This document shows, piece by piece, positions 28,501-58,900 of a stretch of DNA of 64,000 nucleotides. Under the pieces are notes generated by a model. That model was given only the letters and a program-made list of their open reading frames with translations, was not told the DNA's origin and made no database searches. The stretch comes from Botryllus schlosseri (taxonomy: Eukaryota). The stretch is taken from NCBI GenBank assembly GCA_051294905.1, contig CM119379.1, positions 15,686,001 through 15,750,000 of the forward strand, read 5' to 3'. Each line of letters starts with the position of its first letter. Position 1 is the first letter of the stretch. The position numbers and the translations under genes were made by a program.

Positions 28501-31500
28501 GCCATTTCAACTCAATCCCCTTTATGCATATCATTCCATAAAACTCACACATATTATATCCGTAGCGGGCAAGTCCGATATAGACTATGTGCAGGTAATG
28601 GTGAACTATAGACTTGTCTCTAAATATCGTCGCTGGAAAGCCAAACAGTCTTATGTCAATATAATTAGGACATAAATCAGTTTTGTTTTCAATTTCCCTT
28701 GAAACTTCAAGTTCAAATGTCCACTTCACTGGATATTCCTGCTATTTAGGAACTTGGAACCCGGTTAACGAAAGATCATCTCCAAATAGTTATAGAAGAT
28801 CAAAATTCTAAAATACGCGAAGTGGACATAGGACAATTTGGTTTTCTAGCGACGGTATTCATATCGGCTTAGTGTTAATGGTATGAAACTTCTTCTTCAA
28901 ATTCATGAATGAATTCCGTCAATAATATGGGTAGTGGCACCTAACACAATAAGGGCCTGACACAATGATTCGAGTACTCGGATCTGAATCTAGTATTAAT
29001 ACTAGTGATTCAAGTCGAGTAGTACATGATTTTTTCGACCACTGAAATTTTATACACTTCTTGCCGTTAAAAGTTACTACATAAATGAGAATGATAGTTT
29101 CTGTACTCTTTTTCTAGCCGCAAAGATACATCTTGCATTGTAAAAAGTAGCCACATTCGATAAACTGCTGAGAGTTTACGACCCCAAAACCATATCCACT
29201 TTTTGAAACTGCTTGTGAAACTTTCAAATCTTTCATTTACTACTTCTACTAGTAGCAATTTTGACATGTATTGGGAATTGCTACTTGTAATTGTGATTGA
29301 GTTTAAATTACGTCACTGCTTTGATCACCTCTGGAAATAATATCACCTATCATACATTATACTGTACGTTCCATACACGTCTCAAGTAACTCTTGCGCGT
29401 CCAGGAAGAAGCTTTAAAAGTCGTGAAAGGCCTACAAGCCGGTGGTGATACGAATCTCGAATTAGGACTCGTGGCAGGCTTGAATTTACTTCAAGGGTTA
29501 GTACCATCTGTACATCCGGTAATTGGAAATAGATCTTATTAGCGCCTGATTTCAGCGGGGAGAAAGAAGATCGAGACCTCATTATTCTGTTTACCGACGG
29601 GGAACCTAACAAGGGTCAGATGGATGCAACCGAGCTGGTGAAGCAGTATCGTCAGACACAGGCGTCATTGGGAAAAGAATCTTGTGTTCCTTTATCTGCT
29701 TTTACTCTCGGAGGTTACACGCCGACACTTTTGCATTCGGTGAGATGGATGATTTTTCAATTTTTGTGAATTTCAACATATATAGCGAACGACAGTTACA
29801 TATAGGGTACATATAGGTTACAAATTGAGTACGCAAGCTGTTTTATTCCGAATTGAGTATGAAGCTTTGAGCAATCAAGCATGACACCATAGCGATATAG
29901 ATGACGTGGAAAGTTTGAAATATCTGACCACACACTATATATACACTATATTGAAGTTTATTTTGTATATTCGGCGGGGGAGATAGTGTAGTGGTTACGA
30001 TAAGCGCCCACCAATCTGACGAACCGGGTTCGATTCCCGTCGGGGATTCATCTGGGCTCCTCCTCCCCCGCCGTTGCCGTTCTTACGGCGACAAAAAGCC
30101 CAGTAAAAGACCCGACGAAGAAAAGCACTCACAAGGAACGGAAAGAACTAGTAGAAAGGGTCCCGGCTTCAAAGAAGATCAACATCGAAAAAGAACTGTG
30201 ACATCGGGCAGTCTAGGCCGAGGTGGATGTTAGAGTAAAGGATCGCTACTGATGCGTGTCGTTCGATATCCTCCTATCTGTTCATGACATCGTATTATGT
30301 CTTATCGCATTGTGCATTGTGTGTGACTGTTCAGATGAAAAATATAACCCAACAATGTTATGTTATGTTATGTTATCTAGTACGGCCTGCCTTGTGCTAC
30401 ATGTTTTGAATACTAAGATGGTTGTAAGGCGTCCTTGGCGAGATGAGAGTATCGGAAACAATAATTCTCATTGAAATTGTAAACATATAATTCTCGCCGT
30501 GGCAAGGAGTCTATGATCACAGTATTAGAAACACATCCTCTCTCTTTGCTTGACTCAAATCGTTACGACTCATTTACGGAAAGCTTTCCGACTGGCTCTC
30601 AACCAGGGTCGTAACCAAATCACAAGGTTCCGAGTCACAAGTCAATATCACTTTTATAGTTCTGGCTCGAGTCAAGTCCGAGTCCAAGTCAGTGAGTAGA
30701 GGGTCGAGTCTGAGTCATAGTATTGTGACTTGAGTCCGAATCCAAGTCATTGTGTTCACCGTTCAGTTTTGAGTTCAAATCCTGTTCAACCCACTTTTTT
30801 CCACTCTACTTCAGTTATATAGAATGGCTCTCATTCACAATAACGTAATTTTCCTCAGTCCTAACAATTTCTTGCCCTATTTTCCAAGTAGCAGGAATGA
30901 TAGATGAAATATCAATAATGTGATGACTTGACTATTCTTCGAAGTTACAATGAAATGTCTGTATTGGCTGTCCTAGTCTCGAGTCATATGACTTGTTTCG
31001 AGTCATACACAATGACTCGAGTACAAGTCGAGTCCATACAAAAATTGATTCGAGTCGAGTCATGTTACGCATTTGAAAAATATTCAAGTCAAGTCATCAA
31101 AAAATCGGGATTCGAGTCGAGTCATGACTGGAGTCATAACAACCCTGCCCTCAACGGTGGTGAACGTTTTCACGTCAGTAGTGGGATGAATTAAATTCGA
31201 AATGTAGGAAATATTTTCTGGCGACGTAATATTGAAATGACTGAACAACTAGCAGTATGGTACACAGTGTATATTTGCATGAAGACTCGGAAATAAATTT
31301 AGAGCATAGAGGTGTGCCTTCTGGCGGCAGATGATTGACTTTCGCAGATTATAATTGTAGACTCTAGCACAGCACAGCAAGTTTAGCTGTGTGATAACAC
31401 TATTATGGTTGTGCGAAATCTCAGCATCTGCAATATCGCTGTATCATTTCGGTGGAGAATATTTCCTTATGATTATGCCGGTAGTCAATGTAGCCGCCGA

Positions 31501-34500
31501 TGCTGCTCAGGTATAAACTGAAGATGAAAGATTTGACAATCATTTAGCTTTTGAAAAAAAATAATAGTTTGAAAATATATTGAAGATTTTGTATTGTACA
31601 TCAACAGCGCTGTGAACTGCACTACCATTAAATACATGGAAAATCTCACACTAAGACTCTACCGTTTTAGCTATCATGTCAGCTGGGAAGTGATGCATTC
31701 TACTGGCTGAATGAACACCAAGAATTCGAGAGGGATATGCTCACGACGATATTTTTAAGGTAGAATTGCACACACTGTCTTGTGACGCGCGTATGTGTAT
31801 TATCCAGCCGGTTGATTCTAAAAAGGGAAAAAACTACAGTCTCCGACGTCGCCATCGAAATGAGCTGTTGCGACGCCGTGAACTTCAATCTCAAGTTAAC
31901 GTATAAGACGGATCGCATGGTGGGTACTAAGTTATTACTGCTGTGAATGTCGAATTCATTCTTGCTGTTTTAAAAGACAATTTTACGGTACTATATATTT
32001 CAATAGTCTCAACCACAATGTCAACACAAATGACACATGCCCATAAGATCCTGGATATGGTGAAGTAGTTGGTATTTTTTATGTCACAGTTCATCTGTAA
32101 CATGGTCAGCCATGTCTGCCTCTGGTGTTTCATGGGGTAGGGATAGGACGAATCACATATTATTATAGTACTGTCACAAAGCATATAGCCTGTTCACGAC
32201 AATACCGATATGCATTTTCGCCAATGATCGTGAATTAAAGTGTACAACTAAATGCATGATGAACAGTTGCTACATTGTTTAGTTAAAACGCAATTTCCTT
32301 GTTGCTTTTTTCAGGAATTGTCTCTGGATAGCATGAACACCAAGATACATTCTATCGTAGAAGGCACAAAGAAGCACATTCCTTTAAGTTTATGTCTCAC
32401 TAAAGACATGCAGGTGATAGTTTAGCATTGATATCTAAATGGAAATGTACGAAACTGTTTAGAGAACTCTCTCTCCGCGTGAACCGAGGAGTCGCGTAAA
32501 TTTCCGTTTCCATGACTTCACTGTCAAGTCTTGTAACATTAAACAACAACACAACTGATTTTGAACTGCGACTAGGGCTCAGATTGTGACTCGTCAAAAG
32601 TGTGACTGCTGTTCTGCTATCTCATAGTATTATGGTTTTGAGATAACTTGAACAGCTGGTGAAGTTGAAATGAAGACATGATTCAAGTCTGGTTGTTTTG
32701 TGGTATTAACAGAGGTGGTCAGTAACGAAGTACTTCTACTTTTTCGAAGTACTCAAGTAGTTTTCCTCTACTTCTGGTACTTACTCAAGTAGACCTGAAT
32801 TTTACTACTTCTACTTCTACTTCATAATATTTTGTGATCTACTTACTTACTTTTCGCTATTTTCAGTTTGTCAAGTAGAAGTAGTTTAATCCTCCAATCA
32901 GGAAGCAAGCCTGAGAAATTTCGGGGCTGCTTTCACGGAGTATCGACATTTAATTTTCATAAAAGTTGAGTTAAGCCTAGAATTTTCGTCGCGCTTTGCG
33001 CGCAGTCTTATCGGAGTATCCAGTGTGATTTCACCAAAGTATCGGTGAATATAATTTAGGTAGCGGGTTGCCGTGGTTCCGTTCACACCGCATTGTTGCC
33101 CTTCGCCATATCAAATATTTCATCACAGTATATATGGCTTATCATAACGTTTGAAACTGATGTTTCGCAATCTAGCATTTACTTGTCATACCGTGATCTA
33201 ACTGTCCATGGCGTGTCCTAATCTGGAAAAGTGGACCCTGACTTTTTTTTAGTTTTAGAGCTGTTTTAGCATACCAACCTTCGAAACTTTCTGGACTAAA
33301 GACATTAAATACATGTTCCGTTTTTAGATTTATATTTCACTTTCAATTCCCAGTACCATATATTTTGATTTCTAAATATCAGTTCTTTTGTCTGGATAAC
33401 GTACATCTTGAAGTATAAAAAGTGTAGTAATGCCTTCAATTTCCAGAAATAAAGCTACATAATATAGCATTTTTACGGTCCACCATATTTTTTATTTACG
33501 TTTACTAATCGAAGAAAGGGTTTACACCGCATCCAACACAACATCTCCGTATTGCTCTTCGACTAAACTACAGGCCTTATAATATGTGGGAGTGCGCAAT
33601 ACCATGATATTTTCTAAAACGTGCTGTTTGAGTAAACAGAGGATTAGTATCGCATTTCCATATCAATACTATCATTTTCATCCCATGATGTGGACGAATA
33701 CTTATGCTATTGAAAACTGGATACCTGTTGGTATGCATTAATATGAATCAAGCTCGTCACCTGTCGCATAGCTCAATTTGCACCTTTTTATAATCCATGT
33801 GAGCGAATTAGGATCGTTTTCACAACTACTTACTTACTTGAGTACTTTTAAAGTCGGTCAATTCTACTTCTACTTCAAGTAGTTTTAGGTTGCTCATGAA
33901 AGAAGTACTTCTACTTGTACTTGAGTAGATTTTTTCGTCGCTACTTCTACTTCTACTTGAGTAGCTTTCTTGACTACTTTGACCACCTCTGGGTATTAAT
34001 GGTGTTTTTCAACTACAACTGTCATTTACACGAGCTTATTTTTTTATGTTGAGTCCGTAGCTGCCGACTTGGAGCACTGCCTTCTAGGGTGGAGTCAACC
34101 TCAACCTATTGATGTTGCAGCCGTGGATTACACCACTGCGCTATTTTGCCACATTCCAGTCGAGTAATGAGAGACAATTGTTTCGAGTACTGAAATTCTA
34201 TTCTCGTTTTCACTAAGAATTATACTATCACCGAGCATTATCTTTTCGTTACTTTTTTCCTACCGTGGAAACATTGAAATCTCAATAGTTCGTTTTAGAG
34301 CTTACAAAACATGCAATGCAAACGCAACATTTTCACAAACCACAATGAAATAAGTGTAGTCAAAAATATCACATTATCTTTAATGTCGTATACAGCTGAC
34401 ATTGTTGTCTTCGTCGTCGCATCAAAGCAGGGCTGTAACCAAGTCACAAGGCTCGGAGTCCCAAGTCAATCCCACTTTTATAGTTGTGACTCGAGTTAAG

Positions 34501-49900: not shown

Positions 49901-52900
49901 TTCCAAGTCACTGTCTGGTATTAATGATTTTCACCAATGCTAATTGCAGATTAATGAGTACAGATTATGGGCTTACCAATAGGGTGCTATCGCTATAACT
50001 TCCCAAAGGTGCAACCGAATAAACGAAGTAGTACACCATCCTTGGAATGGCTTCAGACGTGATAGCTATCGTAAATGCCTGGAAGACATGAATAATGACA
50101 GAGATTAATATTCCTGACCGGTGAATGGACAATGTACAAAGCATGCTTACATTAGTGACTACCGAGGCGCCAGCTAGAAATTCCAGTAAGTCGTACCACA
50201 CCCCGATACCTGCACACTTCTGAGACAGCGGTCTCCTGCATTAGAGAGAAAATGATGAGCGTCAGATATCATAGCAGCATGTTCCATTTTAACATTGCGG
50301 TTTTGGGGCAGTCTTAAAGTGATTTAGTCACTGCAGAAGGTAGTTCAGCGCTTTGTGAAATAACATGTTCCTATTAGCAACTGGGTCTGTGAAGCACAAT
50401 TGAGCGTAAATCGAGTAATGTACATCTCACCTAAGCTCGCAAATGAATTTGTTCGCGTCCAGTCTGATCTCGATGATGTTGTTCAGAAGTGCGAAAAAGG
50501 GGGCGAGGGGAAAGGCGCACACAAAAAGTGTAATAAATCCAAATTGGATCACTGTAAACATACGGAATAAGTTGAAATATCCATAAGCAAGTTTCTATCT
50601 CTTGGACTGATTAAGCTTAGGCACTTATTCTGAATTTTCACAAATTCCACCCTACCCATTTCGAGGTATTCGTAAAACAGTCCCAGCTCATCAAACTGGC
50701 CGAGATCGTAATCTTGCTCCCATCTCGTGTACTCATTGTCAGGCTTTTCGTGCGACTGCTTGTTGGATTTGTATTGTCTGCAAATAAAATGATGTAATTA
50801 CAAACGCTCATACAAAGACACACAAGCTGATTTTATTCCATTCAGGAATGCGATAACTTTTGATTTTCGTCAATTCATTACAAGTGTTAGGATTGAGATG
50901 AAATTGGAAACATGAGCCTGGGTACTAGGGTTGTAACCAAGTCACCAGGCTACGAGTCTAAAGTCGAACTCACTTTTATAGTTTTGATTCGAGTCAAGTC
51001 AAGTCATTTTCAATTCACCACCGAGTCAAGTCCGAGTCCAACTCAACGAGCAGAGGATCGAGTCAGAGTCATGGTATTATGACTCGAGTCCAAGTCATTG
51101 CGTTGACTGCTCAGTTCCCAGTTAAAGTCTTGTTTAACCCACTTTTTATAACTCTGTTAGCCTGTTCGGTGATATCGAACGGTTCACGTTAGTAATATTA
51201 ATTTTTCTCACTTTAAACAGTTTCTGGTCGCATTTTCAAGTACTACTACCAATATAGGAAATACCAATAGCTTGGTTACTTCACTATTCTTCAAAATTAC
51301 AATGAAATGTCGGTCTTGGCCGCCTGAATCTCGATACATACAACTTGGTCCGAGTCATGTGCAATGACTCAAGTCCAAGTCGAGTCATTACACAGATTGA
51401 CTCGAATCATCAGAAAATCGCGACTCGAGTCATTACAACCCTGACCTGTACCAATATAGGGAGTTCTGCAAATTCCATATCAACATATAATGCACCACCT
51501 TCTTCCATTACAGAATCATTTTTCACTAAATTTGACTCACAAAGTACCAGTATTACAAAATACCTATTTTTATACTAACTATGATTTTGTGCATGGAGAA
51601 CGCATATTTCAATGTCCTAAAAGTCAATATACCTGTATTTATTAAGAATCCATGGCAAAATAATCTCATACGTATTGTTCCAAAGCTGCTTTCCCAGCAT
51701 TATAATCATGAGTTGAAGCGAAAGTTCGTACATGCACCCACCAGGATCGCACTAGAAAATGCAACAGAAATATCAACTCTGCTTTTACCAGCACATTTTA
51801 GCTTCTCTTACTTGCTCCCATCTCCACTCGCCGAGGTAGGTGTAGTTTCCGGGCCTTCCGGCAATAGTTGTTTTGAAAAAGGCGACGTAGAATAGGTAGG
51901 AATAGTAGTTGACAAATTGGAAGCAGAACATTTTAAAGGTAAAACTGTCGTCGAATTCCTGTTGCGTTCTTGGCAGCTCTTAACACAAATAAAATAATTT
52001 TGACTTGTTATTGTCTGCCGAGTGGGCCTACTAACTTTTGAATTAACCATATTACTGACGTTTGCAACTGATGGTTGGCCGGTCGAAAAGGCTTTAGTGA
52101 CCAGCTTAACAATATAGAGTTATAACTTGTTACAATGCAGAAGTAGACGATGCAAAGAGATGCTTAAAGCACAAATAACATAATAATATGTAAGGAAAAT
52201 TTGGAACATCAAAGCCTTCAGAGAGGCAGAGACTTTATTTTAAACCAGGACTGATAGATGATATTATGTGAGCATAATTGAACCCGGAGAGTATAGATTC
52301 GATGAAACCACTGAAGTAGTGGAAGTGTTTGATGCTTAAAACCATGTATATCTCTTAATTTGATAACCCAACCCTGTATGCATGATTATCATGTATTTGT
52401 ACATGCATTGCCAAAGTAGATGTATTGGGATATTCAGACAGGGCACAGAATAAAGAGACAACCATGAAATCTATGACACAATAACAGTTCCTCACACCAT
52501 TTTCACAAACATCTAAATTTCTGAAAACCAAAACATTTCAGCACGTAACTTACCCTTATGGGTCAGCCAAATCGCCACATACTGGTACAACTGAAATCGA
52601 CAAGCACAAAGTAAGGTGTATGTTCATTGTTCAATCACGCGGATAGTCTTCAAAATTACCTTATTCAGAATCATGATGACGACCAGAGAAAGACACGATG
52701 CTGTAATGGTGGTGAGCATTTGAGGCGTAGCAAACTGTCCAATGATACCCACATCTTGTAAAGCGGTCAAGTCTACAGATACAGCGAAGACTGCCTTAAT
52801 CGCCAAACGATAGACAATAACCGCAAACACGGCCGCAAAGATGAGTATTATCTGTCGAGATAAAAGTTTGCGTGCACATGTTAAGAGCTTCTTGGAGGTA

Positions 52901-55900
52901 CAGAACTTCAATATACTATTCAATTGTACACATGTAGGAAAACTCTTGCTTGCCTCAGCTCAAAGGCATCAAAAACATTCAAACGAATAGATATATTTTG
53001 GTAATAACATTGTTTTCGCTACTACAGAAAAGAAACATCTGTTACCCAAAACAAGACTGTTGTTAAGGAAAATGTGATTCTCCAATATTTCTGTTTCATT
53101 CCAATGTACGGCTCCTTTTGTAACGTCACGGGATTAACTCTTTCTTTTTTAACCTCCGCTTCATACTCTGGCCGAACTACATCCGCCTCTTCATCGTAAT
53201 TTACCAGGTCCCAGTCGTAAGAGAGCTTAAACTGCTTTCTCTTCCAAAATTCCAAGAACAACGTCGCTAAATTGAATTCGGTGAATTTATTACCAGCCTA
53301 CTCTATACGAAAAGATAAGGAGTTTCACATACCCCACATCGACATAAACACGGCAAAAATTATCGTCGAAGTGTTATCGAAGAGATGTGTGATCTGTAAA
53401 GAAATATTCTCTTCAGAGCATCTTTGCAAAAAGATTGAATACATCGCTGTAGTGTACCAGAGACGACAGAAGCAATGTTATTGTAGGGTTACCACATTTT
53501 GAAATCAGGAAAGGATGACACTTTCACCAAATCATAAAAGTTAGTTGACCGAAATTGAAAACAACTCATTTTGTATTATCTACTGGAAATCTTGTTTTGA
53601 CTAAAAAAAGGTCATCGCTTTGACTCAACTTCCGATTTACCCACTTTTTACGTTAATTTTGCGGTGTTGACTGAAAAAAAGGTCAATACTTTTATTTGAC
53701 TCCCGAATGACCTCCTCGAACGTTCGTATTACCTATTTCACGTCATTTATACCGATTTTCAATTGACTCTGTCCATTATCCTAGTTGTAAAGACTGTAAA
53801 GGAGGACAAATTGCAAAAAATGAAAACATTTAGCCGTCCTCGCAGGACATTTTCTATTTCCTGAAAAATGAGGACAAATCCTAAAGGACGTATGGTAACC
53901 CTAGCTTATTGGCACCGAAATTTCGCCTGTTTGAGATAATCGACAAGTAACAAAATAGTTCTCAAATGATCCCATTCGGATTAACGATGCCAAACAACAT
54001 CATGTATGATAAATCAGAAAAGATGCTCACCACCGCAGCTGTACACGACGTGTTTAATCTCCAGTAAGTACAGTCTATGTCACACAGTGGGCACATGATC
54101 TCATTACCAGCGTAGGTAGGAGCGTTCTCATCACAGACTTCGTCACTGAACAACAAGACAGTGCAGTAGAATATCTGGATCAAACCGAGGTATACCTCAT
54201 TCTCTTTACCAAATGATATGACAGAAAATAACGAATTGAAGATCATAATACTGTGCATAATAGCTCAATATGCAACCGGACAGAAAATTATAGAATTCAA
54301 TTCAAACATGCAGATTTCAAATATTCATGCTGTTAAACATTCGAATCATTCTATGATTTTTGTTCACCAAGCACAAGTAAACAACACAAGAAGCTGCTAC
54401 TATGACTCAGTGGTATTGTTATGATTATGATACATTCAATTCCGGTTTGTCTTATTGACCGAATGCGAATTGTCCTAGCGAAATGGGATTGAGTCGATTT
54501 TCAAGCAGAAATGCATATTCAATCACTAAATAGTTACTGTATGCCAGAAGACAGGTGCTGGCAGTAAGCTGCAACAGAAATTATCAAAACTTCACATAAA
54601 CTGATGATACTGAAGAATTACCAAAACGTTTTTTGGCATGTAGCAATAAAAGCCAGACATGTTCAATTTGCGTTTACTTACACCGTTATTTCACCATTTA
54701 GTGTTACAATACTGTAGATCATCCAAAGCAAGCCCACACCGGCAGGGTATAGTAGCATGTAAGTGTAAAATCCCAGCCATGCAAAATATACGGCAATTTT
54801 GTCACCATAATATTTTCTGTCACAGAATGTGAAAAGAAACAATTAGATATATTAAAATTGAATAAAAGAAACAGTCATTGTCGTATATGATATATACCAG
54901 TGGTCGGGAACCTTTTTTGTCCGAAGAGCCATATTAGCCCTATTTTTTCCATCTCAATTCCCAAAGAGCCATACATGACGATAAACTGTTACGTCCCAAT
55001 TGAAAATTCGTGACATCATCATAGCACTAATTTGAACTCACTATAATACTTGGGATTCCTCGTATGCGCCATATTTTCTCTGTAAAAACTGATATTTATT
55101 GTTCGAAAATAAAGCTCGAAACGAGAGGTAAGGCACAGACGGGCCAAGCCTCACCATTGATAACACAATTCATCGTATAAGTAGCTTAGAATTTATTATA
55201 ACTGATATTAATCGAATGTGACAGTCTGACTGATTCTGAAAATCTAAATACTTAACGACTTTTCAATTCCCAAAGTATTCGGCGGTTGCGCTACACGCAT
55301 ACATTTTATCGCCGGCACTACACAGAGCTATACTTACCAATCAAGAACGTGGGGATAGCTATGGCGTTGTTTGTAATTCGAGTTTTTAATTGTGAATGTC
55401 ACATCCACAACAGTTCATTTCGCGCCGTAGATCAGCAAGACAATTTGTATTTGAAAACTGCGTTTTGAAATGGGCGCCCCCATGTTTGCTATGCTCTTTG
55501 ATTAATCAGCGCATCGCACAATTCAAGATTTCGAGTCGGGTACATAGAATTCGCGAGAGACATTGGCCGCCGGTATGACAGCTATTTAAATTTGATCATT
55601 TTCAAAAGAGGGGGTCCGAGCCCCTCAGCCTGAAGACAGCGTTGTCTTTTACCTCTCAAATACATGTTTATACTGCCACGATAATAATTATATTGGCCGT
55701 TATGAAAATTTACCAACAAGTCGCTGCAATGTTGATCAATTCAGTACAACAATACATATTCGTCAAAGAGCCATATCTTATACCCAAAAGAGCCATATAT
55801 GGCTCGCGAGCCATAGATTCCCGACCACTGATATATACATACAAGCAGAGAATGAAAATTATAATAATAATTAGACTGAATAACAGACTGCACCATAGGC

Positions 55901-58900
55901 TGTTATATAAGGCCTTCGTTTGATTTCTAGACCACAAATTTACCTTCCTTAATTACTCATGAATAACACACACGATTGTGATGAGATTGTGAAAATCGTT
56001 GTGGTGTACTGCATGGGCAAACTCAAACGGCAATCCTAATACCAGTACGGCGATAAAACACACACTCACAAGATGATATTTGTTACCAAATATTTAAATA
56101 GGGTCACGGTATATCATATGCTTCGTATTATGTTACTAGCTATGGAAAACAAAAGAAATGTATACCGTATGTCTATCACAGCAAGAAGGTTATGAAAATG
56201 AGGTATTAGTAGCCTACCATGCAGCAGACTACAAGTCAAGTTCAATATAACTATACCACAAATATCAGAGGTGCATGCCATTAGTATCAGGTTGTGAAAG
56301 TGCCAAGTCCGCAATGCACCCATGAATACCTAACGGTCCCTCCAACTGCAACAGATATTGCTCCATACAACACAACGATGATACCAACCAAGGATGGTGT
56401 AAAGAGCATCGTTGTATAATACCCCAAAAATGAAAAGTACATCGCAATCTTCTCACCGTAGTACGATCTATGCAACGGAGATGAGATATTACTAGAAAGT
56501 TCTCAATGGTCAACCAAAATAAAATATGTATTCAATGATAATCAGCGGTTTTATTATTTTCATCCACTCAACACACACCCATGTACAGTACATTGTACAA
56601 TGCAATATAGATGGATGTTGAAACGACCTAGTACGGTCTATCAATTTAACATTCAAGAAGTACTGACACAAAAGGAATTTTAATTTCCTCGCAAATAGGT
56701 AATCGAGAGAACATGTGACATTTTGTACTGTGTCGTTTTATTTAAATAAATATTATATCTGTCAATAAACATTGTTATTATTGATAGATCAACAATATGG
56801 TAAAAATATGATAACACATGATAACAGTACTACATCTGACAAGGGATCACATCAGACACATATACCAAATGCTTGGTAAATACACAAACGGCTGACCTAA
56901 TTAGAACCAACATCACACACAGTTATCATAGCATCCATGATTCACCTGATTGCGTCCAAGGGCTGAAACTTGTACCATCTCCCCCACCTTGCCCACTCCC
57001 AATAAAGCAATCTTCTCATATTGCTGTGGACGGGGAGTTTATAATTTTCTGCAGTATGCTTACCCTGGAACATACCAATTAAACAACTGTCAAGTCGCAT
57101 TGACGATCACTGCATCGATGTATTTAGAGGGAATCAAGGAAATTCACTGTTACACCAATCAATCTCACATAACAAAATGTGCTAATAAAAACAACATTTT
57201 GTACTCCAAGAATAATAATGGATCACACAGATTCGCATATAAGCAATCCACAAGTCAAAAAATTATTTTATGGATTGATCCCTTAGTTCACACCTAATAT
57301 ACTGAAGAGCCTGTACGTACAGAGTGTTCATATTCCAACTGACCAGTGCAACTTGATTGACTAGAAACTCCCATGAAGGAAGGATGATACCACATGTGCA
57401 TATTGTGGAAAGTATATTGCACAGGCTTACAACAACTCGTCGCATATAGCTCGAGCATATAAGCCATACTGGATTCGAGAGACGCATTTCACACAACTAC
57501 ATTGAACGTACCGACATAGTTGATACCGAGTAATTTCTGTGAGGTGAGACTTCACCAGGACTGATTCAAGACTGCACAAGTTGAGTAACAGTATAGAAAC
57601 TAACACATTGGTTGGATACTTACTACTTCAGAAACGCTACAAGTTCATGAACATTGCATCGGCCCTGAGATCAAAGATCAAAAGGCTACTGCAGGATATA
57701 AAAGTGAATAGATGTATGTATTCGGCATTCGCCATCAATAAATGAACTATTGAGCTACCAGACACCATCTATCATATGAATCACAAATAATATCCCACCT
57801 CATGTAACGGAAAAGCAGACCCATATGCGCCTTGACTGATCAGTTTTCGGATTCCGAAATCCAGCTTTTCGTCTCCAAATTTAGTCTCGCTCAACACTCT
57901 GTATGCCTGAAAAAATATATGAACATTTGTGATGAAATTAGCTTCATGTTTGCAAGCAAGGTATTTACAATGCGCGATCTCTCCGCATTCGAAAAGAACT
58001 TTTCTTTATCTTTTATATCGAAAAAGGCTTCTTTGTCTCTTGCAAAATCTGCCGTGTGACAGTTTGGTTCGTCCTGGTCATAACAAAAAAGGAAATTATT
58101 AGAAATACTTTGATTTAATAAAATGCAACACCCCTAGGGCTGCGGCATTGCCAAAAAAAATCAGAAACAACTTGCTAAGGAATGACAGTGACTTAACAGT
58201 TTCGTTGTGTCATCAGATTAATAATACTGATATCACTTAATAATAAGTCTGCTACATCGTGACCAGGAGCATCATTTCTTGCCACCAATTATGCACTAAA
58301 CATCATTTACCTCGAAATACATACAACAGTGAGAGTGAAGAGGATAAGAAGTATTTCAAGGAGTGTTTCAAACAGCAGGTAAAAATGCATGCCACTGTGT
58401 GGCACTGATGGTATAATAAGAAAAGATAGACCTACAGTATATAGAAATACAAATGACCTCTAAGTACGGGCTTCGTAATCGACAAGGATCGCAACAACAC
58501 TTGAACGCGTCCCAGCAAGATCTGCAGCACATGTCTTCAGGCTCCACTTCTTCTATCTGGAGTTTGTCGTCATCTTTCAGCGGCATGTTCATACGCATGA
58601 TTTCCGCATATTTCGTGAGACACGGCCAAGGCGCGTGGACTTTTACAAAGCATGTCTTCCCGTCTTGGGAGGCCTTGTTCAAAATGGATTGCGTCTAAGA
58701 GCTTTATCATTATTATGCAGACCAGGTAGGCTATACAGATTTTGTCAAGTAGGTAGTAGCTTGGGGATAGTTTTGCATCCAACAAAAATAAAAGTCCTTG
58801 CTTCAGACTTGCACAAACTACTCATTTAGTTAGTTGACGGTCAACTAACTAACCTTTTTTAGTAGGTCTAGATCTAGCTGTAGTTGCAGATTTTGAAAAT

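Follow-up and report, generated by a model that had tools for sequence, protein, structure and literature searches.

Tandem TM1 exons, probably mutually exclusive, in an ANO5-like anoctamin gene of Botryllus schlosseri

We analysed a 64,000-nucleotide stretch of the genome of the tunicate Botryllus schlosseri, referred to below as the window (assembly GCA_051294905.1, contig CM119379.1, positions 15,686,001 to 15,750,000 of the forward strand; all positions below are counted from its first letter). The minus strand of the window carries a gene that, judged by its sequence, is an anoctamin (TMEM16 family) of the ANO5-like kind. Between two of its constitutive exons lie two homologous exons, A and B, each encoding a version of the first transmembrane segment (TM1). 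We consider it very probable that A and B are a tandem-duplicated, mutually exclusive pair, and the choice between them may be regulated. Each mRNA would thus run from the upstream exon (donor at 56946) into either A or B and from there into the downstream exon (acceptor at 54145), and the outcome would be a pair of full-length proteins with different versions of TM1 and of the first extracellular-loop residues, and otherwise the same. The pair was first pointed out in an earlier note made from the letters alone, which took exclusive use to be the likely mode and suggested examining splice junctions, related species and intronic pairing.

Alternative TM1 exons in an anoctamin gene

When full-length anoctamins were compared with the window by tblastn, they matched it in 15-16 pieces over 61450-45416, which together extend from the N-terminal domain as far as the C-terminus. 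Both exons match the Pfam Anoctamin profile (PF04547, cut-off 28), A at profile positions 3-39 (E 3e-13, 49.9 bits) and B at positions 3-38 (E 2e-12, 47.4 bits), while other exons of the gene, at window positions 53040-53267, 51629-51982, 50430-50561 and 50064-50252, match profile positions 58-441. Both also align to TM1 of the solved mouse structures of ANO1 (residues 323-360) and ANO6 (residues 290-325), the best PDB match being ANO1 for exon A and ANO6 for exon B. The profile and the structural alignments thus bear out the assignment of both exons to TM1 in the earlier note, and its coordinates, lengths, phase, splice sites, stop-free frames and flanks (56946 and 54145) were all exact on re-reading.

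At the protein level the two exons are identical at 19 of 45 residues (42%). The cytosolic half is near-identical in A and B (YYG-KIA-YF--LG-YT-ML), and the differences fall mostly in the outer half and at the helix end, where exon A finishes in a long run of small residues and exon B, which has an additional W and Y, finishes in the polar sequence TLNGEIT. Each exon also departs from the family at one position: in A an F replaces the W of AWLG, a residue found in 93% of 159 anoctamin TM1 segments, and in B an S replaces the G of YG, found in 96% of the same segments. A general contrast in aromatic content between the two exons was considered and rejected, being weak in the window (9 in A vs 11 in B), less in the related species described below (9 vs 9 in total) and gone in the amphioxus pair (9 vs 9).

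Neither exon A nor exon B contains a stop, both are bordered by AG and GT, and each begins with one codon-completing base and ends with two, giving phase 2-2 throughout (Table 1). The junction codons AG/A and AG/T remain in frame. Together the exons amount to 273 nt, and double inclusion and double skipping would both keep the frame.

Splicing of exons A and B in transcripts

To follow the use of the two exons we placed on 52900-57200 the assembled contigs of three sequencing runs from three studies (X1, X3 and X4), and in addition used the raw reads of a further run, X22. The labelling of these runs as RNA is a guess. That the contigs derive from RNA follows from the introns that they skip, which have CT..AC ends on the forward strand, and from the emptiness of most intronic bins. 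In X1, intron 1 lies mostly at a depth of 0.5-3.2, compared with 7-18 on the neighbouring exons, and in X3 and X4 its depth is zero; intron 3, at 54196-54627, has zero depth in every run.

Each of the two exons is transcribed and is spliced to the flanking exons on either side, and their usage differs sharply between samples. The donor at 56946 is joined to exon A in X1 and to exon B in X3. In X1 a 226-nt contig (depth 9.6) runs from the upstream exon through A into the downstream exon, and a 197-nt contig (depth 10.5) runs from B into the downstream exon, so that both forms are present in this run at similar depth. In X3 one contig joins the upstream exon to B (depth 4.7, with 50 letters on the shorter side of the joint) and B continues into the downstream exon and the exon after it, with exon A at zero depth. 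X4 shows the reverse, with a 1050-nt contig that extends from A through three downstream exons and with B at zero depth. All four joints that include a single exon were therefore recovered from the contigs (56946>56467, 56330>54145, 56946>54816 and 54682>54145, written donor>acceptor), whereas neither the joint from A to B (56330>54816) nor the one skipping both exons (56946>54145) is present in the contigs of X1, X3 and X4. Of the junctions listed in the earlier note, those with a single exon were found in the contigs of the three runs and the A-to-B junction was not, and the presence of one exon per contig agrees with its expectation of exclusive use.

Most contigs on 52900-57200 are only 95-99% identical to the window, indicating a highly polymorphic population, and the downstream exon occurs in two allelic versions within one run. 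With such polymorphism, and with other anoctamin loci present in the genome, one may ask whether the two forms come from two loci (paralogues or collapsed haplotypes) instead of from the splicing of one gene. To this we attach next to no probability. The contigs with A and with B agree with the window at every letter and have common flanking exons; each of the remaining three anoctamin loci in the genome has a TM1 sequence different from that of the window and a single TM1 exon (within 10 kb); and the related species, to which we now turn, has both exons on one contig.

Conservation of both exons in a related species

The relative was reached through P0002, a 40-residue fragment matching exon A, and is represented by L023, a 6.7-kb genomic contig from another species. 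It is the only close relative examined: the 45-residue search gave mostly short fragments, the search with the A-type exon matched P0002 and P0003 only, and the two profile searches that started from scaffold proteins yielded nothing closer than relatives at about 43-46% identity. L023 contains counterparts of both exons in the same order as in the window, each with AG/GT borders: A' at 388-525 (138 nt), with 84% amino acid identity to A, and B' at 1159-1293 (135 nt), with 68-70% identity to B. The intron between them is 633 nt in length, compared with 1513 nt in the window, and the downstream exons follow at 73-98% amino acid identity (74% for the first of them).

The two species are sufficiently diverged for this conservation to be informative. 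Between the window and L023, identity at third codon positions is about 47%, synonymous divergence (dS) is saturated and the introns cannot be aligned. Nonsynonymous divergence (dN) over this saturated background amounts to 0.08 in A and 0.16 in B, compared with 0.10 in the constitutive exons (990 nt), and hence both exons have been under purifying selection as strong as that on the rest of the gene. Even the atypical residues are kept in the relative, as FAFLG in A' and VYS in B'. The conservation looked for in the earlier note is thus seen in L023, with both exons intact and constrained, and the comparison shows that purifying selection has preserved both since the deep divergence of the two species.

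These results bear on the idea that one of the exons is a decaying or non-functional duplicate, spliced occasionally as noise. The replacement of a near-invariant residue in each exon (W to F in A, G to S in B) speaks in favour of such a duplicate. However, frames and splice sites are intact in both species despite saturation at synonymous sites, the dN values of both exons lie in the constitutive range, the odd residues are themselves conserved, and each exon is the sole form in one run. The idea is largely refuted by these observations, and we assign it only a very small probability.

A further anoctamin gene was seen in the relative's sample (L024, a Logan contig from SRR23343704, positions 751-1948). 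It has a single TM1 exon, which clusters with exon A with support of 96/98 in a tree of 44 exon columns, and no counterpart of this gene was found in the genome of B. schlosseri. We considered P0003/L024 as a third alternative exon and rejected it as such, the gene being a separate paralogue with one TM1 exon.

Mechanism of exon choice

Several of the ways in which exclusive splicing is enforced elsewhere can be set aside for A and B. Removal of double-inclusion or double-skipping products by reading frame and nonsense-mediated decay (NMD) is out, since both lengths, 138 and 135 nt, are divisible by 3. Steric hindrance of the alpha-tropomyosin type is out because intron 2 measures 1513 nt in the window and 633 nt in L023. 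Incompatibility of U2 and U12 splice sites is out as well: the consensus for a U12 donor is /RTATCCTT, and the donors are GTGAAT, GTATTC and GTAAGT in the window and GTATAT and GTAAGT in the relative. The splice sites of the two exons are unequal, A having the weaker donor GTATTC and an acceptor tract interrupted by purines, and B having the consensus donor GTAAGT.

Competing RNA structure, the docking/selector arrangement that the earlier note had put forward for examination, fared no better. Between the window and L023 we found no conserved intronic blocks, and no intron-intron duplex in the window or in the relative is stronger than shuffled controls, so that there is no conserved pairing and the best duplexes fall within the range of the controls. 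Two short complementarities were seen in passing. One is of 13 bp, between 56188-56206 (about 125 nt downstream of A) and 54192-54210 (about 50 nt upstream of the downstream exon); it is marginal, lying some 2.3 standard deviations beyond shuffles (z about -2.3), and is missing in the relative. Beside it, a 21-nt imperfect complement connects the acceptor of B (54811-54831) with 54210-54230, again with a pairing signal that is not seen in the relative.

By elimination of frame, steric, U12 and conserved RNA-pairing mechanisms, we infer that A and B are subject to regulated splice-site choice, in which trans-acting factors would select one exon or the other. The all-or-none contrast between X3 and X4 fits with such factors being tissue- or stage-specific.

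Another way to view the same pair is as two independent cassette exons, in which case transcripts with both or with neither would occur at appreciable levels. Such products would stay in frame, and NMD could not police the choice; contigs, moreover, lose rare variants, and no mechanism of exclusivity has been found. Three observations speak for exclusive use instead. No joint of A to B, or of 56946 to 54145, occurs in three runs that yielded all four single-exon joints; a protein with two TM1 helices or none would have an inverted or broken ten-helix topology; and both exons are conserved as versions of TM1. We therefore hold independent cassettes to be unlikely.

A number of points nevertheless weigh against a mutually exclusive pair with regulated choice, and are gathered here. 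Assembly into contigs could have missed double inclusion or skipping at a low level, and the RNA evidence drawn from the contigs depends on a guessed label. The junction from the upstream exon to B is given by the single contig of X3. X1, X3 and X4 carry no assignment to tissue or stage. The bulk RNA run X22, of which 6% was read, gave zero reads on the exons of the gene and reads only on an intronic repeat. No regulatory element for the choice of exon was identified in the region. Lastly, that the two isoforms differ in function is something that we purely infer, on the grounds considered next.

Predicted functional consequences

In TMEM16 proteins the pathway for ions and lipids is built by helices other than TM1, with TM4 and TM6 bounding the open lipid pathway (Falzone et al. 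2019, PMC6355197). TM1 lies outside the groove formed by TM3-TM7; with TM2, TM10 and two helices of the partner subunit, TM3 and TM5, it forms the lining of the lipid-filled dimer cavity (PMC6355197). In the fungal scramblases of the family, a role in bending the membrane at the dimer cavity has been proposed for TM1 and TM2, both of which are short and rich in aromatic residues; TM1 of the TMEM16A channel is longer and contains fewer such residues (PMC6355197).

By analogy with these proteins, exchange of TM1 would probably leave the ion or lipid pathway itself unchanged, and would most likely tune how the protein is seated in the membrane and bends it, or else its folding and trafficking. 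The earlier note had proposed that the isoforms could differ in trafficking, assembly or channel/scramblase behaviour. The best structural matches of the two exons (ANO1 for A, ANO6 for B), taken with the concentration of their differences in the outer half, would point to an effect on how the membrane is deformed, or on packing, at the dimer cavity. The difference in aromatic residues is small, however, and does not appear in the totals of the relative or in the lancelet pair, and we give this specific reading a low probability.

Conserved isoforms that are alike except in TM1 offer a natural test of what this helix contributes within one protein background. With this gene the TMEM16 family also joins those membrane-transport proteins in which tandem exon duplication has diversified one helix.

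Relation to known exon pairs and to other anoctamins

As a splicing phenomenon the arrangement is ordinary, tandem exon duplication in a membrane-transport protein being well known in kind, and general properties of tandem duplicated exon substitutions have been described (PMC9741552, PMC8373072). The nearest likenesses are exons 8/8a of CaV1.2 and exons 5a/5b of the sodium-channel (SCN) genes, which, like A and B, are adjacent homologous exons of near-equal length and the same phase, with one per transcript, and are likewise ancient, conserved and devoted to swapping one transmembrane segment. They differ in protein family and in the helix concerned, which in the present gene is peripheral and lines the dimer cavity, and is not a helix of the pore or voltage sensor. 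In CaV1.2, the choice between 8 and 8a is reportedly regulated by PTB, whereas no counterpart regulator is known for A and B. In Drosophila Dscam exon 6 and human ATE1 exons 7a/7b the outcome is the same, with one exon taken from a tandem array; those docking/selector clusters, however, use competing RNA structure, unlike the region of A and B, which is without conserved intronic blocks or above-shuffle duplexes.

Within the anoctamins, a close parallel is found in lancelets. The Branchiostoma gene 'anoctamin-4-like' has two tandem TM1 exons of 135 nt and phase 2-2 between the same flanking exons as here, located in B. belcheri at 31065-31199 and 32249-32383 of locus L034 (KV411916.1), and its two copies are 43% identical to one another, compared with 42% for A and B. 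The two isoforms of B. floridae, X1 and X2 (XP_035662313.1 and XP_035662314.1), are both of 1020 aa and differ only in the TM1 segment, as do the isoforms in two hybrid Branchiostoma assemblies. Both amphioxus copies retain the consensus W and G, unlike A (F) and B (S). The amphioxus switch is known from automatic annotation, and TM1 switching in an anoctamin is thus, as an annotated prediction, already contained in RefSeq. In the same annotation, the B. belcheri model XP_019638132.1 leaves out the intact upstream TM1 exon (L034:31065-31199), which the other Branchiostoma annotations include in isoform X2.

The earlier note had supposed that TM1 exon switching was undescribed for anoctamins. 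For searchable papers this stands, no paper describing it being found in the literature searched; for databases it does not, given the Branchiostoma isoforms X1 and X2. What is new is therefore the present instance, which is absent from that literature, the same switch being annotated in lancelets. In the available portions of two human catalogues of mutually exclusive or tandem-duplicated exons (text and supplements), ANO1-6 are not mentioned. Among the RefSeq members listed for a nemertean, several molluscs, a brittle star and spiders, the isoforms have one TM1 each, by annotation only. A fish ANO4-like locus and a fish ANO5 locus each have a single TM1 exon; vertebrate ANO5 shares with the present gene the exon boundaries around TM1. 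One model from the representative library, P0001 (2374 aa), contains three anoctamin TM1 segments some 450-740 residues apart, and looks like a fusion of three tandem anoctamin genes.

The window gene has 45-46% identity to vertebrate ANO5 (TMEM16E) over its exons. In a full-length tree it groups with ANO5 (52% identity over 599 aligned columns) on a long branch, with a support of 85 by the Shimodaira-Hasegawa-like approximate likelihood ratio test (SH-aLRT), and it lies in a weakly supported chordate group with the lancelet gene and ANO4. In the 44-column exon tree neither A nor B clusters with the lancelet exon in the corresponding position, and the homology of the pairs is not decided by that tree. 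The existence of both pairs raises a datable evolutionary question, namely whether lancelets and tunicates inherited the switch once or invented it twice. At its most ambitious, the argument could be carried to a pair of TM1 exons that was an ancestral chordate feature, retained by lancelets and tunicates and dropped by vertebrates once their anoctamin genes had multiplied, and that toggles the dimer-cavity helix between a longer, aromatic-poor, ANO1-like form (A) and a shorter, aromatic-rich, ANO6-like form (B), so setting membrane bending or thinning and hence scrambling. We regard this combined proposal as improbable.

Gene layout and minor features

The coordinates of the features around the exon pair are collected in Table 1. 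The downstream constitutive exon, whose first residue (S/V) is completed across the junction with A or B, encodes the start of the first extracellular loop, including conserved cysteines.

Table 1. Features around exons A and B, in window positions (a slash in a sequence marks an exon border)
Feature	Position	Strand	Details
Upstream constitutive exon	56946-57064	-	ends CAGCCCTTGGACGCAATCAG/gtgaat, donor at 56946; from sequence reading, translation and contigs
Intron 1	56468-56945	-	478 nt, GT..AG; joint 56467/56946, CT..AC on the + strand
Exon A	56330-56467	-	138 nt, phase 2-2; acceptor ...ttgcatag/, donor /gtattc
Intron 2 (separates A from B)	54817-56329	-	1513 nt
Exon B	54682-54816	-	135 nt, phase 2-2; acceptor ...tgtgacag/, donor /gtaagt
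Intron 3	54146-54681	-	536 nt, GT..AG; joint 54145/54682 in X1 and X3
Downstream constitutive exon	54031-54145	-	joints 54145/56330 (X1, X4) and 54145/54682 (X1, X3)
Next constitutive exons	53393-53333 (61 nt) and 53266-53042 (225 nt)	-	joints 53266/53333 and 53393/54031 in X1, X3 and X4

The intron that separates the last two exons of Table 1 is very short, at 66 nt (53267-53332), and its splicing is confirmed by the contigs of three runs. Intron 2 contains an element of about 947 bp (54891-55837) with 23-nt terminal inverted repeats (TATATACCAGTGGTCGGGAACCT and AGATTCCCGACCACTGATATATA), on which contig depth reaches the thousands in one run, indicating a multi-copy and probably transcribed family.

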